From sequence record OU509535.1: a DNA stretch of 64,000 bases; one strand, written 5' to 3'. Below are positions 4,945 through 39,914 of the stretch, piece after piece; position 1 is the stretch's first letter, and every line of letters starts with the position of its first letter. The notes under the pieces are model-generated. The model worked only from the letters and a program-made list of their open reading frames with translations, was not told the origin of the DNA and made no database searches. The position numbers and the translations under genes were made by a program.

Positions 4945-7900
4945 TTATATAGATGTTGTGTTATTCAAATCATCAAATTTTTTTGATAAAATATCATATC
5001 TTCTACGTTGGTACGCAGCTTCAACAATTAAACATTCTTCCATTCTAAGCATATAAATTTCGCCAGCTTCTACAGCTTCCGTTAATTGAACCCCATTTTC
5101 ATCATATGTTTCACTTACTGCGGGCCATGATTCATAAGTTATTAATCCATATTTTGTCCAATCAAGACCAGCAGAAATTAATGCATCTCTAACTTGTTGT
5201 GCAATATACCCAACATGCCATCTAGCATCATCTTCACCTTTTAATGCAACAGCAGCTTTCATTTTCCACATTTGAAAATTAACAGAACCCCATGCGTCTA
5301 ACAATTCATCAGGTATATTTTGTATATCAATTTTATGAGTTTCATCTGATACAACAGTAACCGCGTTTTGTGTATATATATTTTGTATAGTTGAAGATGA
5401 TGAACCAATGTCATATGTAGCTGTTGTAGTTGGAATTATATTACCAGTAACTCTTAAATTTGTTCCTGCATTTATTGTTAATGAAGAAGATCCAGAACAA
5501 CTTATTGTACCAGTTACAGTTGTACCACCGTTATAATAAAATTCCAAACTTTTGCTACCAGCTCCTGAATTATATCCTAAACCAATTGAATATGTTGGTC
5601 TAAAAGCGTTAGCATAAACTACCCCAGAAAATGTTCCAGCAGTTGCTGTTAAATTATTAATAGAATAATCATTATAAAATGAATATGGAGAAATAGATGC
5701 CTGATTTAGAACTAACACATCACCTATATTACCCAAAACACCATATGAAACATATTGATACGAAATGGTACCGGATGAAGTTGTTAATCGTTTAAATAAT
5801 TCATATAATCCAGTAGCTGAAGTACTTGAACCCGATTCAATATATATTGGTATACCAACAGCTAAAAATTTAGCATTATCGGCTGATACAGTAAAAGTAG
5901 TCAAATTATTTGTTGTATCTACCGAGTTTATAGTAGCCAATATTGACACTTTATAACTAGATGGCAATGACATACCATCAGTAACCATTTTCGAAGTATT
6001 AGTATATCCTGATGTAATAGTAGTACTTATAACGTTATTAGATTTAGATTTATATGTGTGTACCCATGGGGCAATTAAATCACCACGTTTGAACAAACCA
6101 CCACCAATACTTCCATCTACTGCGGTATATTGTGATACCGTAGTTAAAATACTTGAAGCTGGGGATTCTGGTATATATGATTGTACACCATTTGGAAATA
6201 ATGGTATACCACCAGTATATGCTTCAACTGCTTTTATTATTATTGGGGTTGTTGATGGAACTGTAATAACTATACTACCATTTCTAGCATAACTGTAAAT
6301 CCCATTCCAAGCACTTAATCTTTTCTGAGAAAGCATCATCATTTTATAACCATTTCCAAAATTAACTACTTTTTCCGCAAATGATTTAACTAAAGCTGCA
6401 TCAGTATTTTGAGAACTTTCTTGTGATGCTGACGTTTGCCATGCAACTGCATTTTTAGTATCAAAATTATCAGATAAATCTTTATACCATATACACACCA
6501 TCGAACGAATCGACGGATTTCTCCAAGGAATGAAAACAGTACCAGAATTTATTTGTAATCCATAGGGATTAAACATTTCATTGGCATATGGACGATCACG
6601 TAAAGATTCCCAATCGGTATCAGTAGTCATGAAAATATTATATGTACCATATTTGAAATCATATCCACCATGATAAAATGCTCCTAAATCTCTAGCTGGT
6701 GCACCAATAGCATATGTTGTTTGTCCATTTGGTGTATCGTAATGAGTTGTACTACTTGGATATAGATAATCACCATTGTCAGAAATAGTTCCAAAACATT
6801 CTTTTTCAAATGTCACTTGGTTATAATCTAAAAAGTTATCTTTATATGTATTCATACAGTTCAATTGTAAACCTTGGAACCTACTTGCTTTACCATTGAA
6901 ACCCCATCTAGAGATGGTTATGAAATTATAATCCCATTCATTATATGTAGCATCGAAGTTATGTTTTTGAACAGTACTATAAACAGTACTTTTATTCGCA
7001 TTATATACCCACGATGCTGCTGGACCAATATAACAACCACTAGCATCGAACGACGTTCCTGTTATTACTGCTATATAATCTGGAATATCTCCAGAAATAT
7101 TATTTGCATGTCTCCAAGCTAAATTATTTATTATTTCACAGTTAGTTGCTGAAGACCAATCACATGCATTTCTGAATATTCCACGGCGACCTGATTCAAA
7201 TTTACATCCATGTAAATTAACACGGTTAAAATTACCAAATCGTGATGTTACACCTTCTGACACCATATAATCTAAAACATATTGATAATCTTTAATATTA
7301 TCATCAAAATTTAAATTATAGTCAGTTTTAAAAACAGTTTCAGTTATCCCAGATGGCATAAAAACACCACACCAGTTTCCATTTTTAGCTCTAGTACCAT
7401 ACATACTAACGCCTTCTGGATTTAGACATAATATTAATGCACCTGCTGAACTATCATCCGACATAGTTGTTATCGAATGATCTCCAATAAAAATACCACC
7501 ATATACAGCAGTATCTTGTAAACTTACAGTGCCCCAATAACTTTGTTTATTAACTGCTAACCATTTTTCTTTAATTTCATCATATCCATGACACAATCCA
7601 GACAGACGCTTACCAGTAGCTTTATAGGTGTATGATTTGCCAGCATAAATCATAAATCTGGATGCACCGAAATGATAATCAACTCCAGTTTTCCATTTTA
7701 TATGTATTTTACCAATTCTATATCTATTTGCTGGTACTGTTATTTGTAAACGTTCTCCACCTGAATAGGTTGATTCGTTATTACTTCCATATATTGCTAA
7801 TGGTATTAAAGATGTAATTCCATTTATTACTTCACCAATACAAACGAAATCATCAGTTGTTGTATCAGTGGCTTTACTATAGGTATATGAAATAGCACCA

Positions 7901-9269: not shown

Positions 9270-11699
9270 TCAAGAAGATATGGAACCATAAGTTAGCCAG
9301 CCAGTTCCCACATACACTATACCTTCAGCACCCCCTGCCTGTGCTCGTAGATAAGGTACTTTCTCGCCTTGGGCTGGTTTATATGATGCATATATATTAG
9401 CTGCGGTATTTATCTCAGAGTTATATGTCTGTGTCCAGTCGTTTCCAGAAACAAACCATGGACCACTTTGAGAATACATTGTGAACATCTGTCTGGTTGT
9501 ACTATCTGTCCCGTTACCACGACATTCCAGTACTCTCGCCCCCGATGAACCATCGAAAAGCGTAAAACCGAATGTAGCACTACTATCACCAATAACCCTG
9601 TTGTTGAGTATTCTGGTGTAAAAGCACGTGCCATATGTTTTGATTACTGGGATACTCTTAGTTCTTCCCGAACCAGTAGTTGCAGCATAGTTTATGATAT
9701 TACTATCGATGATAGCTCTCGCAGCATTGGATAAGAAAATTATTTGATCCTCATCGTCAGCATTATACTTTGTAATCTGGTTCCTGCGTATAATGCAGTC
9801 AGCCGCTGATGCAACCTGAATTACTAACCCTTTATTGCTAGTATCATCAGTGGATATATTCTCTTCCACTATGCTGCCTGCTGATAACAGGTATATCTGA
9901 ACCCACCCTTTGAAAGTATTGTTACGTATTACAGGGTTGACCATCTGCACTGACATACGGGCTGTGGTGCTTTTATTTTCTATAAAGTTGGCTTCCATCA
10001 CAACCTTAGAACAGTTAGTGACACGCATAGGAACAGTCTGTGTGCAATTTTCAGACATCAGGAGCTTGTTCCCTCTCATCTCCAGCAAGTCTACGTTGAA
10101 GGAAGTAACCGAGTTTATAAATCTGGCTGTGCCTGTGATTGTAAACTGGTTATCATCTATTGTGGCGTAAGCCTTACCAATGGAAATGCAGTTGTACGCA
10201 GCAGAATAAACATAGTTTTGAGCTACATACTGTCGGTGATCTTGCACAGATGATGCCCACCAGGAAAGCATAATCCCACCACGCTGCAATTCAAATCCGT
10301 TCTGTGGGCATTTTTGCAAATCAGCCTGTAATCCATTGATGTAGTTACCTACAACATCGGCTGATGCCTGAACAGATACACCGATATAGTGGTTCAGCAG
10401 CGTATTATTAATGATTCGAGCCGAGGTGGTTGCCTCAGACTTAATGGACATAGTGTAACCCCATACGAGGTTATCTTCCAGTGTAATGTAGGTTCTCTTA
10501 TCGGCGGAAGAATCCGACTGCCATTCAAAGTCAGGTGGATAGATTGTGGAAGTACCACCATTGCTCCCGTACTCCGCGAAAATGCCGATATATCCACAAA
10601 GAGTACCATTATATACCACGTTGTTGTTAGGGGATTTCAATGCTGGATCGCATACGAAAACACGCTTATTAATCGCGGTGTTACGTCGGATAATCGTTTT
10701 TGGGCTGGCACCAGACCAGATAGCCCAACCAAAGTGATCGACAGACTCACTACCACTTGACCCTAAAGGTTGGTTGGCAGATACGTTGTATAGACTGTTG
10801 TTTTCTGCCAGAGCCATCGAGCATTTCCAAAACTGAATACCTGACCCGTAGATCTCTCTCATCGTGACGTTACGCACGACGGGTGATCGACAATAGCTAA
10901 AACGCAGACCAAGAGTGCCATCCGAATATGGTGTAGGATGTGCTCCCACCCCCATCGTCTCATATGTAGGCCCACCTTTATTAGCTTGACGGGTATAGTC
11001 GATACTGAGATTTTCAACAGTTACTGGCTCCACAAAGACGCCTTGTGCGGTTGGCTGTCCACCAAATTCAACAAGGAATGGTTCACTGAACGGCCATGCT
11101 GCACCTGTGGCATTAGCAACCGGATCAACGTTATCGAATGTCCATGTGGTTCCACCATCAGAACCTTTGATAGTACAAGGCTTGCCATTATAGATAGCAA
11201 ATTGATGGCGAGTAGTTCCCCAGTTCACCTCACCTTTAGGAAATATTAGTGTTCCACCATTCTGCATAATATATTCAATAGCCGCTACACATGCAGAACC
11301 ACAGGCAACACCGTCACCTGTTACACCAAATTTTGAGGCAGGTATCTCTGTTAATACGCTTTGAACTGTTCCACCTTGAGATAACCCTATTTTACTTGCA
11401 CCAATATTTGTAGATAAATCTAAAATAGAGGGGGCTTTTTCTAAACCAAATGTACCTACAGCAGTAATTAAAGTTAAATTTTGTCCTGAGATACTCCACG
11501 ATACAGGTATTCCTGTTGCAGTGCTCCTATACCAACAAGTTTGTGTGTTTTCATCATATAAAATTGTATATAAGTCTACTTCTACTGAAGTAGATAGATA
11601 TCCTACCGAAGATTTTTTAATACCAAATATTCTAGCTATAGATTCTTTATTCGTCTCTCTTGATACTGAACCTTTGGGTTGGATTAATTCATTCGCCAT
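9270..11699 (-). CDS. Tailspike / putative polysaccharide depolymerase (beta-helix)
   Basis: QPKGS N-terminal module, then SKFGVTGDGV...LIFPKG entry into Asn-rich parallel beta-helix repeats; body is visibly GC-richer than the genome. Confidence 0.85.
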   Translation of the reverse strand: MANELIQPKGSVSRETNKESIARIFGIKKSSVGYLSTSVEVDLYTILYDENTQTCWYRSTATGIPVSWSISGQNLTLITAVGTFGLEKAPSILDLSTNIGASKIGLSQGGTVQSVLTEIPASKFGVTGDGVACGSACVAAIEYIMQNGGTLIFPKGEVNWGTTRHQFAIYNGKPCTIKGSDGGTTWTFDNVDPVANATGAAWPFSEPFLVEFGGQPTAQGVFVEPVTVENLSIDYTRQANKGGPTYETMGVGAHPTPYSDGTLGLRFSYCRSPVVRNVTMREIYGSGIQFWKCSMALAENNSLYNVSANQPLGSSGSESVDHFGWAIWSGASPKTIIRRNTAINKRVFVCDPALKSPNNNVVYNGTLCGYIGIFAEYGSNGGTSTIYPPDFEWQSDSSADKRTYITLEDNLVWGYTMSIKSEATTSARIINNTLLNHYIGVSVQASADVVGNYINGLQADLQKCPQNGFELQRGGIMLSWWASSVQDHRQYVAQNYVYSAAYNCISIGKAYATIDDNQFTITGTARFINSVTSFNVDLLEMRGNKLLMSENCTQTVPMRVTNCSKVVMEANFIENKSTTARMSVQMVNPVIRNNTFKGWVQIYLLSAGSIVEENISTDDTSNKGLVIQVASAADCIIRRNQITKYNADDEDQIIFLSNAARAIIDSNIINYAATTGSGRTKSIPVIKTYGTCFYTRILNNRVIGDSSATFGFTLFDGSSGARVLECRGNGTDSTTRQMFTMYSQSGPWFVSGNDWTQTYNSEINTAANIYASYKPAQGEKVPYLRAQAGGAEGIVYVGTGWLTYGSISS

Positions 11700-11735
11700 A
11701 TTTATTCCTTAATAAATTGTAAACCTTACTTTTAT

Positions 11736-13682
11736 TTAATCTACAGCCTCTATTTCAATGGATACAGGATACTCGTCATTAACAACGTTAGGATGCGTAC
11801 CATCAAGGTGAATATCAAATCCTAACGTTTTATCTATGCTGTAGGTGTTGTCGACAAGACCTCCAGCGTTAGTTATGTAGAAAGGCCCATAACTCTTGTT
11901 CGTGTTTGTAGTTGTTGAAGTAGATGTGCTAGTTGCAGTTGATCCGCTAATAGTTGTCACAGTGTTTGTTGTTGTTGTTGCCGCAGGCACGGAGTCTGTG
12001 CGAGTTGTAATACCTCCATTGTTTGGTGATGGGACGTTTACAATATACTGTTGCTGTGCAGTAGAGGATAAATTACAACGTAATGTTACTTTATACCTAT
12101 GATATGGAAGTAGACCCCTCACGTTAACTGTCGAGTGCTGCCCTTTGAACAGGGTTCCGGTGAGCTTACACTTCATCCCTGGAGTGCTAACTATTGATTC
12201 CCCCGGGTATTCAGGATGTGCTGTTCCTCTTCCGTTTGTAATATCTGCAATCGCCAGCCAGGGTATAATTGTAAGTTCTGTGGTTCCTAATGTTAAACCA
12301 AGCCCTGCGATATTTTTATAGTTTTCACACTTCAGATTAACATATCCACTGGTGCCAGATTTTCGGATCAATCGGCATGGCTGAGTACTAGAAGTAATCG
12401 TGCTTGCTGCGAATCCGTCATACCTGAACACCACACGACCATCAACTTTAGCTTTATCCAAGGCCCATATCGCAGTGCTATCCCCACCGCCTTCCCACCA
12501 GCCTGACATGTCAATGTCACAGTTATATAGGTTATCAGCTCTGGTTCCATCACCAACTTTAATACCTTGTGAAGCCCCAGCTATCCCATGCTGGAAAGCA
12601 TAATTATTGATTTTGGCTCCAAAGAATGAAAGTGTTTGATTATCAGTTGATGCTGGGTTTGAGTGGAACCAAATACCAACTTGACTTGTTCTTACAATAA
12701 CGTTATCAATAATAATAGCTTCTGTCCAACCTATATTATTATAAACATCTATAGCTCTTCCTGTTGTATAATCTCTAATGAAACTATTCTTAACCTCTGC
12801 ACCATAAAAATCTGAAAATCTTACAAAGGCTTGCCCACTACTACTACCTACAACTGTAAAGTTTTTTAAGCATACACGGTTAAATAGGCTTTGTGCTTGA
12901 GAGTTACGCTTAAAAGTAAGAGCAATATTATTTCCAGTATGAGTTATTACTGGGCTTACACCTTTAGTGGCCATACCTGGTCCATAGATAGTTAATTCAT
13001 TAGTGCTGTTCACGAACTCTAAACCACCATTAATTGTATAACCTGATGCTCCTAGTGAAGGTATTTCTAACCTACGGATAGATTTTGAAATACAATAATT
13101 AATTGCATTAAGTAATATTTGATCAATTGTAGCTCCATCATATAATCCAAATTCTGTGGCACAAACTTTTCCAGGGTTGATAGGAATTCTTTGCCAAAAA
13201 AGAGACGTACTACCAGTTGGTACACATGTATAACCACCATCATCCACTGCTGTACCCAGTACTGCAACAAACTCCCCACCACCTGTTGTACCACCTTCAT
13301 AATAAGAAGAAAGAAGTATTTTTTGTCCAACCTTTCTTGGTGTAATTAGTTTTAGGCTTTCATAAGAACTAACCTGACCAATTAAATCGAATCCTGTTTT
13401 AGAACCTAGCGTTGCTATTTGTAAACTAAATGTACCAGTACTTGTTATCAGTTCAAGTGCTTCATTGTTTATACTCCATGAAATTGGTGTACCAGTGGCA
13501 GTACCAACATTCCAACATGTAGTTGTTTTTGAATCATATAATACCAGTGTAGTACTGGAGATTTCATGTTTATTAGACAAATATTGAATATTTTCTGGAG
13601 AAATTCCATATATTAATGAAATACTAGTTTTTGATGTATGAATCGCAGACGATCCTTTTGCTTGTGTTAAATCAGTTGACAT
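11736..13682 (-). CDS. Tailspike / RBP
   Basis: Start moved to the ATG at 13682 (GGAG SD, MSTDLTQAKGS); divergent QxKGS module, GGGEF...DDGG motif and beta-helix body. Confidence 0.85.
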   Translation of the reverse strand: MSTDLTQAKGSSAIHTSKTSISLIYGISPENIQYLSNKHEISSTTLVLYDSKTTTCWNVGTATGTPISWSINNEALELITSTGTFSLQIATLGSKTGFDLIGQVSSYESLKLITPRKVGQKILLSSYYEGGTTGGGEFVAVLGTAVDDGGYTCVPTGSTSLFWQRIPINPGKVCATEFGLYDGATIDQILLNAINYCISKSIRRLEIPSLGASGYTINGGLEFVNSTNELTIYGPGMATKGVSPVITHTGNNIALTFKRNSQAQSLFNRVCLKNFTVVGSSSGQAFVRFSDFYGAEVKNSFIRDYTTGRAIDVYNNIGWTEAIIIDNVIVRTSQVGIWFHSNPASTDNQTLSFFGAKINNYAFQHGIAGASQGIKVGDGTRADNLYNCDIDMSGWWEGGGDSTAIWALDKAKVDGRVVFRYDGFAASTITSSTQPCRLIRKSGTSGYVNLKCENYKNIAGLGLTLGTTELTIIPWLAIADITNGRGTAHPEYPGESIVSTPGMKCKLTGTLFKGQHSTVNVRGLLPYHRYKVTLRCNLSSTAQQQYIVNVPSPNNGGITTRTDSVPAATTTTNTVTTISGSTATSTSTSTTTNTNKSYGPFYITNAGGLVDNTYSIDKTLGFDIHLDGTHPNVVNDEYPVSIEIEAVD

Positions 13683-13754
13683 TATAATTCTCCAAATATA
13701 ATTATAATAATATTTATAAAAGAAAAAGCCCCATGATGGGGCTTTTTTATTATT
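13683..13754. repeat. 72 bp intergenic direct repeat, copy 1 (terminator + TATAAATA late promoter + RBS)
   Basis: 71/72 identical to 17701-17772. Confidence 0.95.
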
Positions 13755-14300
13755 ATGAAACATATTTAGATAATAATTCTTTAATTTTTTTTATTTCTCT
13801 TCTTTGATATGCTGATTATACAGCTAAACATTCTTCCATTCTTAACATATAGATTTCACCATCTTCTTTTGCAGGAGAAATTTCATTTCCATCATTGTCG
13901 TATACAGCTTCACTTGAATCCAATGATTCATAAGTAATTAAACCATATTGTGTCCAGTCGATACCAGCGTTGGTTAGTGCTTCTTTGACTTCCTGTGTAA
14001 TATAACCAACATTACCATCTTGCTGAATCTACCACTTTCAATTCTACTGCTGATTTCATTTTCCATATTTTAAAATTAACAGTACCCCATGCATCTAGTA
14101 ATTCGTCTGGTATATCACCAATATTAGTTTTATAATTTTCATCCGAAACAACAGTAACAGTGTTTTGACTATATATTATTAAATGCGTTTTATGATACAC
14201 CTAAATTATAAGTTGCTGTTATGTTTGGACTAACCGTAGCTTGAACAACAACTCGATTCGGTGAACCAGGTGGATTTAAAATCAAATTACCAAATGGTTT
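13755..14300 (-). pseudogene. Relic of a tail fibre C-terminus (S74 chaperone domain)
   Basis: Reads ATYNLGVS*NAFNNI/YSQNTVTVVSDENYK...ARW/NVGYITQEVKEALTNAGIDWTQYGLITYES...YMLRMEECLAV*SAYQRR, with two frameshifts and stops; colinear with the C-terminus of 4945-8658. Confidence 0.85.
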
Positions 14301-14315
14301 TCTACTTTACTTATA

Positions 14316-17300
14316 CTATTTGTTAATTGAGGATAATATACTTTCTAACTGTCTACGTTGATACGCAGTTTCCATAGCATTACACTCATCCATCACCAGT
14401 CTCCACTGGTCTATAGCTTCAGTTGCATCCTGAATAATAACGGATCCAGCTTCTTTAACAAGAATCTGTGTTTCAGGAGTAACTACATTACCCTCTGCGT
14501 CATATTCAGCCGGTACTGTCTCATAAACAGCATCCCATGATTCAACAATAGCGTCTTGGGCTTCCTGTGAAACATGCACGATTAACCCCCACTCAGTAGC
14601 ATCCTCACCAGCAGCTTCAAATGCTTCAATGATATCCTGAGCAATGTACCCTATGTGCCAACGAGCATTTTCCTCACCTTTTTCAGCAATGGCCCAGTCA
14701 TACTTATAACGCTTGATGCTGATAGTACCCCATATATCGAGGATGTTATCAGGAATGCTTTCCTGAACAGGCTTATGTCTCCTGTCAGATACAACAGTAA
14801 CAGCATTCTGTGTATAGATGTTATTCCATGCCAATGATGCTGTACCAAGGTTATGAGTGGCTGTCGATGCAGGCTGAACCCCTCGAGTTGTTGCTGTCCC
14901 GGTGAGTGTCACGTTATTAGCAGTGAATAGCCCAGTAGATGTTAGGTTGCTGGTTGTAACATTGTTGAGGGTTACATCACCTTTCACGCTATATCCAGGT
15001 ATCAGTGCCTGATTGATAACCAGTGTATCCCCAGCAGCACCTACAACAGCATCAAGAATATACTGGTTAGAGGCGGTGCCGTTACTGTTCATCACCCTGC
15101 GGTATACCCTGGTGGAACCTGTGTATGACGTAGAAGACCCGGATGCCACATAGACAGGGATGCCCATAGCAATATACGGAAGACTGGCTGGTGGTACTGT
15201 AATAGTCGTGCGACTGTTAGTTGAATCAACCGAATTTACTGTTACATTAAATGACTGCTGATAAGCACTACCAAGCGTCATCCCGCTGGTAATAATTTGT
15301 GGAATAGGATTTCCTGCCACTCCTAAAGTAGCATTGTACTTGTAGTCATTGGAGTGTTTATCGACAGATATCCACGGATAAACTATATCGCCAGGCTTAA
15401 ATAACCCACCTCCCGGAGACTTGATGTAGCCATTGGTGTAGTTACCGAATACGCCAGCCATACCAGATTCAGGCTTATAGGATAAACCTGTAGGGAATAC
15501 AGGTACACCGCCAGTAAAAGCCTGAATAGCTTTCAGTACGATCGGCTTACCAGATGCAACCGTAATAACCAGGTTCTGCTGTGGCGTGAACGTGCCTACG
15601 CCGTCGTTCGCGTTCCACTTGACATTAGGGATGATTGCCATCTTATAGCCATTACCGAAGTCAATACAACCTTCTCCGCGAGACATTACTAGGTTTCCAT
15701 CAACTGAAGGTGTTTCAATGCTCGCAATTGATTGCCAGATAACAAAGTTTACCGGGTCGAAGCTCCCTGTTAAGTCTTTGTACCAGATACAGATATTAGA
15801 CCTGTATGCAGGTGAGTGCATTGGTACATAGAGCGTTCCTGAGTTTACCTGTAGCCCGTATGGGCTGATGAACTCTTTAGACTCTTTGTAGTCACGCAAG
15901 TGGTCAAAATCTACACTTCCAGCAGCCGCACCGTAAAGACCATAAGTACCATACTTAAAGTCATAGCCACCATGAAGGAATGCTCCTACATCATGAAGAG
16001 GTGCACCAATACGAGTAAAGTTGATGCCATTGTATGCGTACTGATTCTCTGTATACAGATCTGGATAAACCCAGTTTCCGTTTTCGTCGTAATATCCAAA
16101 ACATCCATCTTCGAAGGTAATGTAGGTCCATGAAGAAACTGGTTTGTACTGGTGAGCAATCCCATCAATTATCAGTCCAAGTGCTTTAGAGTATACTGGG
16201 TCTCCCATCTGCTTACTAATAACAAAAAGATTGGGTGTATGTTCAAGATAGTTATTAGTGAAAGAATGACCACGGCAGTTGGTATAAATTACTCCCTTAC
16301 CTGGGCGTTTTGTTTCATCAGAAATCTGAGTGTGGCTAACTGTCAAATTCACCCCAGACATTCTGAAACCACCGCCAGTTACAACTAGAAAATAATCTGG
16401 ACGCTTTGCGTCTGGACCTTCAATCCATGCGGCTCCGTCACACAGACTCCCACCTTCCCATGTAGACCAGTCAGTCATGATTTGAGCCAAGCCTTCACGC
16501 CCTTGGTCAAGGAAGACGTTTTTGCAATACAGTCCGTAAAAGTTACCAAAAGTAACACCGGCATCACTAGATGTTGGTAAGTCTGTTGTAATCAAGCCGG
16601 AGTTGATAACACCGCTATTTGCCGGGCGTGCAACTAACGGAAGCTGGAAGCCACGTGCATGGATATTCTCAAGGGTGACATACTCCGGGTTAATCAGGAA
16701 GAACGCCGAGCCAGCAGAACATACAGATTCTGAGAGTGAAACCTTATGATCACCTAGAATTTTAACATTTGATATTTCTACATGATTCACTGCAACAGCA
16801 CCCCAAAATTCTCTTTGATTTATTTTAGCATATACAGCATCAATATCATCATAAGAGTGTTCAAACCCATTTAACCAATTATTGGTTATGGAACGTTTAT
16901 ACTCATTTGCAGCATATACATAAATAACTGATCCTACACAATTATAATTTGCAAACTTTCTAACTTTTATTCCTTGTTTAGATATTCTATAACTCCCACC
17001 TGTTATTTTTATATAAACCTTTTGTGCAATCACTGGTGCTAAAAGATCATCATTTGATAATGAATATGTATCTGTTGGACAGATAGTATATAAAATTCCA
17101 TTTACCGCCTGTCCAAGACAAACTGTGTTTGCTGCATTTACATCTGAAATGAGGCTAGAGTTATCACCACCAGTAATACAAATTGCACCATTTGCACGTG
17201 CATCAATGTCGGTACCAAATAAAACTTTAAGTTGATACTCTATACCATTGGCGTTATAAATCTTAGCTTCTGTTATAACATGACTACTTGCCAAAGAACT

Positions 17301-36657: not shown

Positions 36658-36701
36658 AAATAGACCCTAAATATTCATATATCTTTGAAGGAGATGTGAA
36701 T

Positions 36702-37070
36702 ATGTTAGAGTTTATAATCAAGGTTGTATCCGACAATTATAAACCCATCCTGATTGTATTGGCGATGGGTTTTTGTGTTTTCGGAGGATGGAAAGCAAAT
36801 ACTTATTACACCGGTTATCAATTAAGTATTTCCCAAAAAATTGAGAAAAAAGTAGATGATGCTATTGATAAGCTACAACAAGAAAGTGCAAAAAATTTAG
36901 TTGAAACACAGAAGACAATTAAAGAGAATGCAACTAAAATTGTGGAAACCAAAGTACCAGTTATTATAGAGAAAAAAGTATACCAAAATGTCTGTTTAGA
37001 TGAAGATGGTCTTCAGGTACTAAAAGAATTAAAACTTAATTCAACTGAAGGAAGGAGAAAACTACAATGA
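36702..37070 (+). CDS. Inner-membrane spanin (Rz-like)
   Basis: N-terminal TM segment, coiled-coil periplasmic part, C-terminal VYQNVCLDEDGL; TAAATA at 36668 and AAGGAG SD. Confidence 0.75.
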   Translation: MLEFIIKVVSDNYKPILIVLAMGFCVFGGWKANTYYTGYQLSISQKIEKKVDDAIDKLQQESAKNLVETQKTIKENATKIVETKVPVIIEKKVYQNVCLDEDGLQVLKELKLNSTEGRRKLQ

Positions 37071-37384
37071 AATTTAAATTAAAATATGTTGTACTACTCT
37101 TGGTATTATCTTTAATTGGATGCAATAGTACTGCTCCAGTTGAGATGAAACAACAAGTACAACAGGAAGTACTATTGGAACGCTGTTCAGAAGACACTCC
37201 ATTACCAACACAAAAAACTGTTGACAAAGACGGAAATGTTGGATATGATGGTAAAGAAGTCTTTAGGGTATTACGTGAATGGGATGCAATTTATTTTGAT
37301 TGTGCGAGCCGTTTAGATGCACTCATTACGTATCTACAAAAAACCCAAGATCCTAATTTTAAGGTAACTATAAAGGATAAGTAA
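37067..37384 (+). CDS. Outer-membrane spanin lipoprotein (Rz1-like)
   Basis: Signal peptide with lipobox LIG-C; adjacent to the i-spanin; C...YFDCASR. Confidence 0.78.
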   Translation: MKFKLKYVVLLLVLSLIGCNSTAPVEMKQQVQQEVLLERCSEDTPLPTQKTVDKDGNVGYDGKEVFRVLREWDAIYFDCASRLDALITYLQKTQDPNFKVTIKDK

Positions 37385-37968
37385 TGAATAAGTACAAAGT
37401 ACTAAAAGTATTACCTTTATCATTTTTAAATTCTTTAGATCATACTGATATCAAACTAAAAATAGGACATTTTGGTGGTTCAAAATTTTCATACTATCCA
37501 CAAAAAGTTAAAACATTTTCAAAGAATCACAAATGTGTAGCATGTGGAATTGAAGCCACTGAAGTACGTATTGAATATATGCACGGATGTTCTCATGTAA
37601 TCTATGGCAAACCACACATCAATGTATATGCGGTGCTTGGTAATTATTCAGTACTAATGACAGTTGATCACGATATACTTGCATCCGAAGGCGGAAATGA
37701 TTTAGACAATAATTTTAGTACCATGTGTTCCAAATGTAATAACAAAAGAGGATCAAAGTATAAGACACTCAAATCATTCCTCAAATCAATTGAGGGGCGA
37801 GATCTCTTAAAGGAATACATGTCTGTACCTAAAAAGACAAAAACCAGTCAGAACGCGGCTGAGCAGCGTTTACACGATGAATTTTGGAAATTAGGACATA
37901 ACTGGCATTACAGAGAATATCTTCGTTATCTGAAGGCCAAAAATAAAGCTAAAAAGAAAGGGGCATAA
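37384..37968 (+). CDS. HNH endonuclease
   Basis: CxxC (CVAC), TVDHDILASEGG...MCSKCNNKRG. Confidence 0.85.
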   Translation: MNKYKVLKVLPLSFLNSLDHTDIKLKIGHFGGSKFSYYPQKVKTFSKNHKCVACGIEATEVRIEYMHGCSHVIYGKPHINVYAVLGNYSVLMTVDHDILASEGGNDLDNNFSTMCSKCNNKRGSKYKTLKSFLKSIEGRDLLKEYMSVPKKTKTSQNAAEQRLHDEFWKLGHNWHYREYLRYLKAKNKAKKKGA

Positions 37969-38042: not shown

Positions 38043-38438
38043 ATGCTCAAAGAGTTTGATTACAGTACTTTAGAAGTTATTTCAGCAGTTAAAAATATCA
38101 ACAATTTAGATGATGAAAAAACAGTACTGATCACGATCACATTTGTAAACAAAGAAGATTCATATAAACATTTATCTGGCATAGAAGAAATGTTGCATAA
38201 ACTTCATTTAGAAGAAAATCGGAAATATATTAAACTACAATGTAGTTATACCCAAAATTTGAACAATTTTTTAATTATAAATAAAACAATTAAGATTAGT
38301 TTCAATGATCCTAAACAAAAATACCGTACTAAATCGTTCAACGAAGATCAGGTTAGTAATGAATTACTAATGGATATTGAATTTATCAATGATTTCTTCG
38401 ATTCATGTGATAATGAATTAAAAAAGGTATACGTGTAA
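38043..38438 (+). CDS. Hypothetical protein
   Basis: 131 aa ORF with phage-typical composition. Confidence 0.7.
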   Translation: MLKEFDYSTLEVISAVKNINNLDDEKTVLITITFVNKEDSYKHLSGIEEMLHKLHLEENRKYIKLQCSYTQNLNNFLIINKTIKISFNDPKQKYRTKSFNEDQVSNELLMDIEFINDFFDSCDNELKKVYV

Positions 38439-38446
38439 AAATATTT

Positions 38447-38476
38447 TTGAACAATTTTAGTACTATGTAATATAAT
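38447..38476 (+). promoter_or_regulatory. Sigma70-type promoter facing a gene-free region
   Basis: TTGAAC-18 nt-TATAAT. Confidence 0.55.
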
Positions 38477-38482
38477 GTAAAT

Positions 38483-39000
38483 AATATCAATTCGAGGACT
38501 GAATTCTGCTGAATATCTATATGTATATGGATATACAAATAAACTTGAACCTATCGAAAACGTAGAGAGGCATTTGAGTGGTTCAGCAGCACGCCTTGCA
38601 GGTAGTACCGGTGATAAAATCCTAAGTGTGAGCTTACAAAGCACAGCCATAATTCCAAAGAGTGCACAGGAGTCATCGCAACACGGCAAGTAAAAGAGAG
38701 CTATAGACATATGCTTTCCATCACTATAATCCTCTGGTGATGATAGATTGAACCTACGGAAAGTATTTTCCATAATTGTTAAGGGAGAATACACCAAAAT
38801 TTTTTCAGGAGAGTTGCGTCTAAATTTTGTTGTATTCAAGTACTGAGATTGGTCAAATAGTCTCAGTATTAAGTGTGTGATATGATACCTACTAAACCAC
38901 ATGACCTCTGCATAAGACTGAGATAGGGAGAAACCGGGCAGACCGCTTCCGTTCTTTATAAAAAAAGAAATTCTCAATTTGACAGTTTCGAAGACTACCA
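38483..39000 (+). ncRNA. Candidate large structured non-coding RNA (unclassified)
   Basis: No plus-strand ORF of 60 aa or more in this interval; several helices of 8-16 bp, some with G:U pairs; upstream promoter; GC higher than the flanks. Confidence 0.45.
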
Positions 39001-39225
39001 TCTTCAAGAAATAAAAAAAAACGTTTTTAAGAACGCGTTCCGTTGCGTTATTTTTTTCTTCCCTCCCTGTGGGGGGGGGATATAAAGTTTCTCTTCCAAA
39101 CCTCTTCAAGAAATAAAAAAGAAAAACAACAATTACCGATTAAAATCAAACAACACAGAACGAAACGAAGTGAAGTGAATGAGTTGTTTGATTTTATGAG
39201 AGATGTGTTGAACGAAGTGAAATAC
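39000..39225. repeat. Repeat/palindrome cluster with G tract (candidate origin-like element)
   Basis: TCTTCAAGAAATAAAAAA twice, AACGAAGTGAA twice, palindromes AAAAACGTTTTT and GAACGCGTTC, and CCCTCCC-TGT-G-run. Confidence 0.5.
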
Positions 39226-39464
39226 ATCTTGACATGGATAAACAATAAGTACTTAATTAATAAAAACAAATAAATCAAGTGCTGAAATAAATTACAAAGG
39301 AATTATATCTAATGAATACTATAAAAAAAGAACCAGATATAATTAAGTACTGAAATTAGTTCTCTTTTTAAATAACCGACTTTAAATTAGCCAAATAAAT
39401 TCATTTAATAAAAAGAAATAAATATTTCTATAAATCCACACCAAAGGACTTATAGGAGAGATTA

Positions 39465-39914
39465 ATGCAAGAACCACAAGACATAAACCAGTTACGAAAT
39501 TTAATGGATTTCATAGTACAATCAGAAGAAGACGAGTCCTATGATCAATTACTGCTTACATTTATTGAAAATAGTTTATTCCTTGAATCAGCAGCACACA
39601 ACTGGCATTTACAAAGCAAACACTACACAAAGCACTTACAATTAGATGAGTTATACAAAGAACTACCGGAGTTCATTGATGCATTTATTGAAGGAATTAT
39701 GGAATCAAGAGGGCCATTGGTAATTGGTACTGGAAATAACTACCAATTCACTGAAATAAGTACTTGTATTCCTACTTTAGAAGAGTATCTAAATCAATGT
39801 GAAGCAATTCACCAGATGCTTGAATCTAATGAGGACTATGGAAGTACTAATACTCTTGAAGACATAATGAGTTTCATTGATGGAGTTCTTTATAAGTTAA
39901 AACACTTACAATAA
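39465..39914 (+). CDS. Ferritin/Dps-like protein
   Basis: AHNWHL...HLQLDELY...D.FIE...E.H...DI...L ferritin-type helix pattern; TAAATA at 39419 and GGAG SD. Confidence 0.75.
   Translation: MQEPQDINQLRNLMDFIVQSEEDESYDQLLLTFIENSLFLESAAHNWHLQSKHYTKHLQLDELYKELPEFIDAFIEGIMESRGPLVIGTGNNYQFTEISTCIPTLEEYLNQCEAIHQMLESNEDYGSTNTLEDIMSFIDGVLYKLKHLQ

Follow-up and report, generated by a model that had tools for sequence, protein, structure and literature searches.

A large, structured non-coding RNA encoded in several diverged copies by RaK2-type jumbo phages

The DNA analysed here (64,000 nt of sequence record OU509535.1, hereafter the window) originated from a Klebsiella RaK2-like jumbo phage (Alcyoneusvirus). 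A gap of 1 kb was located between a DUF7325 gene (38043-38438; Pfam) and a Dps-like rI.-1 gene (39465-39914). Positions 38440-39460 of the window aligned with positions 6764-7784 of RaK2 at 97.9% identity (blastn), and the RaK2 annotation of this gap consists of a minus-strand hypothetical ORF alone. Upstream of the DUF7325 gene lie a spanin pair (36696-37384) and, after it, an HNH endonuclease gene (37384-37968). The first-pass annotation, made from the letters of the window, had described the region as GC-richer than its surroundings, and indeed the GC content was 0.34-0.41 between 38500 and 39100 versus 0.235-0.30 in the flanks. Its statement that the gap holds a single plus-strand ORF of at least 60 amino acids (39043-39273) was confirmed by the ORF list. 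The spacer preceding the rI.-1 gene (39240-39460) was AT-rich (GC ~0.24) and contained a perfect 12-nt inverted repeat (39248-59/39340-51) as well as several short direct repeats. Farther away in the window, the stretch 10000-16000 was GC-rich (up to 0.43, compared with ~0.31 elsewhere), and the GC skew switched sign near 24 kb.

The gap encodes a large non-coding RNA. Its gene occupies 38447-39233 on the plus strand and consists of a promoter, a core of ~575 nt, a terminator and a conserved tail. The promoter TTGAAC-18-TATAAT, noticed in the first reading of the sequence, was recovered by a consensus scan at 38447-38476 (plus strand), with a -35-like hexamer at 38447-52, the TATAAT box at 38471-76 and a predicted transcription start near 38483. 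A TATAAT or TATACT box was found in 37 out of 37 aligned copies of the element, an extended TG in 31 and a -35-like element of the TGRRAC type in 34. The promoter of the RNA copies matches a divergent RpoD-like promoter class of CBB and GAP32, which is composed of a -35 TGAAACG plus a -10 TATA box; 11 of the 18 CBB promoters of the TGAAACG class precede DNA-synthesis genes (PMC5259590).

The short form of the RNA core (~575 nt) was delimited to 38483-39056 on the plus strand by nhmmer, alignments and covariation, both ends being predicted; the nhmmer profile match to the window copy spans 38448-39125. A terminator scan located an intrinsic terminator, a hairpin followed by a U-run, at 39032-39056 (plus strand). 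In approximately half of the paralogs, the window copy among them, the terminator is situated between hairpin Hm and a hairpin with a G-run, Hl. The terminator hairpins covary, and in the alignment the insertion was present or absent depending on the copy. The conserved tail (39060-39110, plus strand) comprises Hl (39062-66/39072-76) and the repeated motif R2 (39098-39110). Hl was paired in 99.5% of cells, with an invariant G-run and a partner strand that varied from C to U only. A direct repeat, D1, was present at 38984-39021 and 39086-39123. Farther downstream, a probable 3' extension (39141-39233, plus strand) is made up of two hairpins (39141-57/39180-96 and ~39201-33), both of which carry GAACGAAGTGAA or a near copy of it in the loop; similar hairpins were found downstream of other paralogs. 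The extent of ~500 nt with an end at 39000, as initially estimated, was therefore too short: the core extends as far as the terminator, and conservation persists up to ~39110 and probably up to ~39233. Since Hl, R2 and the GAACGAAGTGAA-loop hairpins stay conserved past the terminator, short (~575 nt) and long (~750 nt) forms of the RNA are both plausible. The extension hairpins are candidate, and probable, parts of the transcript.

A 253-codon ORF spans the region on the minus strand (38348-39109), and a shorter form of it is annotated in RaK2 as ORF014w. This raises the alternative that the locus is not an RNA gene but a protein-coding gene, a DNA-level repeat or a chance structure. The ORF was not conserved: within the element, the longest open frame measured 50-120 codons in 37 other copies versus 225 in the window, no conserved or shared reading frame was detected among these 37 copies, and indels were not multiples of three. 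From this comparison of sequences, the minus-strand ORF was judged not to be a gene. The annotations of relatives over the RNA conflict with each other or are empty. Several relatives carry small 'hypothetical protein' calls there, which look like annotation artefacts.

Homologs were numerous. With the gap of Escherichia phage EJP2 that is homologous to this region as the query, blastn returned 290 places in 72 phage genomes, with identities of 67-82% over ~500 nt; with a second paralog as the query, it returned 293 places (4-5 per genome). The phages with the element belong to Alcyoneus-, Asterius-, Mimas- and Eneladusvirus and to unclassified relatives; RaK2 has at least three copies and other genomes have 4-5. 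The element forms a multi-copy family of diverged copies across the RaK2/121Q/GAP32/BF jumbo phage group. The 64-kb window contains one copy alone. In RaK2, the copies are located at 6.8 kb (the window copy), at 191.3 kb (L368:1148-1690), directly after the sigma-factor gene ORF244, and at 279.7 kb (L125:2180-2717), upstream of Dam methyltransferase/cytidylyltransferase genes. The 3' halves of the 191.3- and 279.7-kb copies were near-identical to one another. Each paralog has its own neighbourhood that is conserved across genera (the Dam, endonuclease VII and DUF7325 loci); it follows that the copies are old duplicates maintained by selection rather than recent mobile insertions. In the DUF7325 locus, the upstream protein was 52% identical in an unrelated contig. 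When the genes next to the window copy, the Dam-locus copy and the distant copies described below were searched with Pfam, no recurring partner protein family emerged; the only matches were DUF7325, on the upstream side of the window copy, and a T4 baseplate gene in the vicinity of one distant copy.

Some copies had peculiarities. In Dam-locus copies (e.g., L006:1430-1465), a terminator-like hairpin plus U-run separates the -10 box from the first conserved RNA segment, and the true transcription start is therefore uncertain there. In phage UE-S1, the Dam-locus copy (L016, ~1500-1620) has an internal tandem duplication of ~55 nt over the helices He and Hd, and a 'repeat_region' is annotated inside the endonuclease VII-locus copy.

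Further members of the family were among the matches listed in scans of IMG/VR, metagenomes and genome bins. Because scanning metagenome and genome contigs for a gapped motif proved insufficiently specific, real members were selected with the nhmmer profile. In two distant metagenomic relatives with a GC content of 44% (L218:8020-8720 and L228:9150-9850, both on the minus strand), the 3' domain, Hm, Hl and the tail with R2 are preserved, while the 5' domain is divergent and the R1/R2 motif is changed. The L228 copy adjoins the T4-type baseplate gene. Their sequences point to a wider family that would extend outside the cultured RaK2 group.

The fold was analysed in an alignment of 37 non-redundant copies (A3), onto which helices were mapped from window coordinates. 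RNAalifold was uninformative on the full-length alignment, and helices assigned manually and guided by covariation were used instead. The pair statistics cover 68 pairs in 13 helices, after removal of two alignment artefacts; the structure before this removal gave the same picture. Standard pairs made up 94.8% of the cells in the 37 copies, compared with 78.5% for shuffled partners and 39-45% for slid partners. Both sides had changed in 48 of the 68 pairs, the covariation score was 0.50 versus 0.21, and none of 500 shuffles reached any of the observed measures. The covariation that the first-pass annotation proposed to look for in homologs was thus present, and another of its yardsticks, the folding energy relative to shuffled sequences, gave a concordant result: for 38483-39062, the plus strand had a z-score of -3.66, with 0 of 100 shuffles as good, and the minus strand a z-score of -1.81, which is no clear departure from shuffles. 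In the reliable helices, read on the plus strand, G·U pairs accounted for 10.4% of cells and A·C for 0.5% (229 vs 12). This excess of G·U bears out the early suspicion of pairing at the RNA level and implies that the pairs form in plus-strand RNA, and not in the minus strand or in DNA. It rules out minus-strand or symmetric DNA-level pairing and, together with covarying helices and a non-conserved ORF, makes it highly improbable that the locus is anything other than an RNA gene.

The RNA folds into two domains, a 5' domain (38506-38690) and a compact 3' domain (38839-38983), and three pseudoknots between a loop and a strand (PK1-PK3) covary. All features of the fold lie on the plus strand. The 5' domain consists of PK1, Hb, Hc, Hd and He. 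In PK1 (38506-38589), the strand 38506-13 pairs over 8 bp with 38582-89, the loop of hairpin Hc (38578-80/38590-92), which was itself paired in 100% of cells with two of its three pairs covarying. Because MAFFT misaligned PK1, this pseudoknot was given a separate custom test: at least 7 bp could form at the same place in 29 of the 37 copies, compared with 9.8% in a cross-sequence control, and at least 10 different compensated variants were counted. Hairpin Hb (38550-38570) has a conserved 9-nt loop, was paired in 93.7% of cells and had changed on both sides in all five pairs. The long-range helix Hd (38595-99/38686-90; 97.3% paired, 4/5 pairs covarying) encloses the helix He (38609-12/38675-78; 99.3% paired) and a variable hairpin.

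The 3' domain contains Hg, Hh, PK2, PK3, Hi, Hj and Hk and is followed by Hm, the terminator and Hl. Hairpin Hg (38839-38870; strands 38839-43/38866-70 and 38845-50/38859-64) was paired in 90.9% of cells, with 10 of 11 pairs covarying. PK2 (38852-38983) forms between the loop of Hg (38852-58) and the strand 38977-83, which immediately follows Hi on the 3' side; in it, 99.2% of cells were paired and all seven pairs had changed on both sides. PK2 is retained in the distant relatives L218 and L228. Hairpin Hh (38874-38903) was paired in 94.8% of cells with 4/5 pairs covarying. The most conserved core (38907-38976) holds PK3 (38907-11/38938-42; 100% paired), whose 3' strand lies within the loop of hairpin Hj (38926-30/38946-50; 100% paired), together with helix Hi (38919-23/38972-76; 99.5% paired) and hairpin Hk (38953-55/38966-68; 97.3% paired). 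The junction nucleotides of this core were invariant in A3, and the blastn match of the window copy to the Asteriusvirus phage EJP2 was limited to it. When RNAalifold was applied to the 3' domain alone with one distant relative added, it independently returned Hg, Hh, Hi, Hj and Hk; of the 30 pairs in this prediction, 24 were compensated.

Downstream of the 3' domain, the fold includes hairpin Hm (38990-39005), the 3' strand of which is R1, the first copy of the repeated motif. Hm was compensated in the RaK2 lineage and in L218; its value of only 67% paired in A3 is lowered by a shift of the alignment register. The 5' strand of Hm, R1 and R2 showed a concerted three-way change. Two further pairings, a closing 5'-3' helix (38544-49/39105-10) and a pairing of the conserved segment 38571-78 with R2, were dropped, as neither was compensated in the second RaK2 copy.

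The seven helices that had been listed from the window sequence were all complementary as described, and the evidence from relatives differed among them. Covariation could be quantified for two of them (38506-13/38582-89 and 38839-50/38859-70, corresponding to PK1 and Hg). The 16-bp helix (38787-802/38822-37, inverted repeat I2), spanning 38787-38837, closes a variable peripheral domain that is absent from several paralogs; it is complementary on the plus strand, and equivalents of different sequence were seen in other copies by eye in the alignments, not by a formal count. The hairpin 38514-22/38525-33 was present in all copies with variable sequence. The remaining three (38489-93/38501-05, 38719-24/38737-42 and 38763-71/38784-92) are complementary on the plus strand and lie within sequence specific to the RaK2 lineage.

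No Rfam 15 family matched the window at the gathering score. Relaxed searches of 38300-39500 (E up to 10) and of six diverse homologs (E up to 5) gave chance-level matches only, which were to unrelated small RNAs lying outside the core. No model of RNase P RNA, 6S RNA, group I or II introns, known self-cleaving ribozymes or riboswitches in Rfam 15 was matched, and ARAGORN detected neither tRNA nor tmRNA in the 64-kb window, in line with the initial failure to recognise tRNA, tmRNA, RNase P or group I/II features. A group I or II intron was also rejected on the grounds that the element has its own promoter and that the flanking genes are complete, differ by paralog and lie on the opposite strand in one group. 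With covariation, the G·U excess, a conserved promoter, no conserved ORF and no Rfam match, ROOL and GOLLD included, the original classification as an unclassified large phage non-coding RNA stands. No earlier description of the RNA was found in the literature searched, and to that extent it is previously undescribed. We consider it very likely that it represents a genuine family of structured non-coding RNAs.

By analogy, the nearest kind of RNA may be GOLLD and ROOL, large ornate RNAs known from phages and prophages. These are often located beside tRNA islands, whereas no tRNA was found in the window by ARAGORN and none is annotated beside the other fetched copies of the present RNA. Membership in either class was excluded because of this missing tRNA linkage and because the RNA matches neither Rfam model. 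The RNA also differs from them in its carriers, which are Enterobacterales-type jumbo myoviruses, and in its copy number: a genome contains several diverged copies, all of which have promoters of their own. Shared features are an origin in phages, a size of 0.6-0.8 kb, many covarying helices, and pseudoknot or kissing contacts. The 3' region of GOLLD is conserved and the 5' region diverges (10.1101/2024.12.08.627333), just as the 3' region of the present RNA is universally conserved and its 5' region divergent. A covarying loop contact in ROOL proved to be intermolecular (10.1101/2024.12.08.627333). The covarying loop contacts of PK1 and PK2 could be intra- or intermolecular.

A precedent for expression comes from the related jumbo phage PA5oct, in which RNA-seq revealed abundant intergenic non-coding transcripts of 0.24-0.62 kb (PMC7318152). 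They resemble the present RNA as intergenic non-coding RNAs of a jumbo phage and provide a precedent for expression only, not homology; homology to these transcripts was ruled out, as there was neither a profile match nor a common motif.

We hypothesized that the RNA, in its folded state, might act in trans, with an architectural or partner-binding function or by RNA-only assembly. Its role would then be of the kind discussed for GOLLD and ROOL, and it would be made from a promoter class that is typical of these phages and lies in CBB mostly 5' of DNA-synthesis genes. Such a scaffold or assembly mechanism is tentatively favoured, with a likelihood that we place a little below even. The explanation as a whole, an RNA gene family that produces a trans-acting folded RNA, has in our estimate an even chance of being correct.

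Of the roles suggested in the first-pass annotation (protein sponge, anti-defence decoy and replication primer), all of which stay hypothetical, the last is kept as an alternative. The RNA might instead serve as a primer for replication, with each copy marking an origin at which a persistent RNA-DNA hybrid forms at the G-run and is processed to prime DNA synthesis. RNA II of ColE1 is a folded primer transcript, and oriF and oriG of T4 are promoter-dependent origins. Like these systems, the element has a promoter-driven transcript (~0.55-0.6 kb) for which folding may be important. A conserved G-run is located close to the 3' part of this transcript, and there are several promoter-dependent sites per phage genome (3-5 dispersed copies per ~350 kb). 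The promoter-to-G-run distance of ~590 nt, a G-run conserved beyond the needs of pairing, the AT-rich non-coding spacer with repeated motifs downstream of the element in the window, and a promoter class that in CBB mostly precedes DNA-synthesis genes (PMC5259590) would also fit such a role. However, the cumulative GC skew was unchanged at 38-39 kb, and approximately half of the copies have an intrinsic terminator before the G-run is reached, unlike ColE1 RNA II and T4 oriF/oriG. The conserved tertiary structure is far richer than in these systems: the covarying tertiary architecture and the invariant junction nucleotides exceed what known primer RNAs need. No antisense RNA comparable to the regulator of ColE1 RNA II was evident. 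A primer function is thus considered unlikely.

The invariant junction nucleotides, which stay fixed while the helices around them covary, would also fit a ribozyme or a ligand-sensing RNA, with the 3' domain of ~145 nt (38839-38983) as the catalytic or binding core and the R1/R2 motif marking sites of processing or alternative pairing. In this domain, two pseudoknots surround a three-way junction and there are invariant unpaired nucleotides; it is also what the distant relatives have preserved. The concerted three-way change in R1, R2 and the 5' strand of Hm counts in favour of this reading as well. Set against this are the lack of any ribozyme or riboswitch match in Rfam 15, even when E-values up to 10 were allowed, and the fact that no cleavage site or ligand can be named. 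Moreover, inspection of A3 by eye revealed no conserved alternative pairing between the terminator hairpins and the core. Catalysis or ligand sensing is accordingly rated as improbable, to the same degree as the primer function.

The positions of the copies relative to genes bear on a role in cis, in which the RNA would form the 5' untranslated region of a downstream operon and control that operon, for instance through terminator read-through. Most paralog groups are co-oriented with the next gene at a distance of 20-160 nt, and the Dam-locus copies are without an internal terminator. In the endonuclease VII locus, however, both neighbouring genes lie on the opposite strand, so that the RNA is a stand-alone unit there. 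In addition, the downstream genes differ among paralogs, and in the window a terminator and a spacer of 340 nt precede the next gene. A leader function is therefore regarded as very unlikely, and a trans-acting folded RNA is retained as the preferred explanation.

Relative to the first-pass annotation, the analysis added a length of more than 500 nt, three pseudoknots and a multi-copy family. To our knowledge, RNAs of this size and complexity are rare once the classical ribozymes and ribonucleoprotein RNAs are set aside, and the majority of those that remain are without a known function. The finding also corrects annotation, as spurious hypothetical proteins cover the RNA in many deposited genomes, e.g., RaK2 ORF014w. 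The carriers are cultivable phages of E. coli, Klebsiella, Salmonella, Erwinia and Yersinia, and ~290 natural sequences provide a well-resolved covariation map. With cultivable phages, several diverged copies and this number of sequences, work on the structure, expression and partners of the RNA is directly feasible. There is a minor but real chance that the RNA represents a new functional class specific to RaK2-type jumbo phages, either a new ribozyme or sensor with the invariant double-pseudoknot 3' domain as its basis, or a structured primer that defines the multiple replication origins of the phage. If so, it would be more than another passive ornate RNA.
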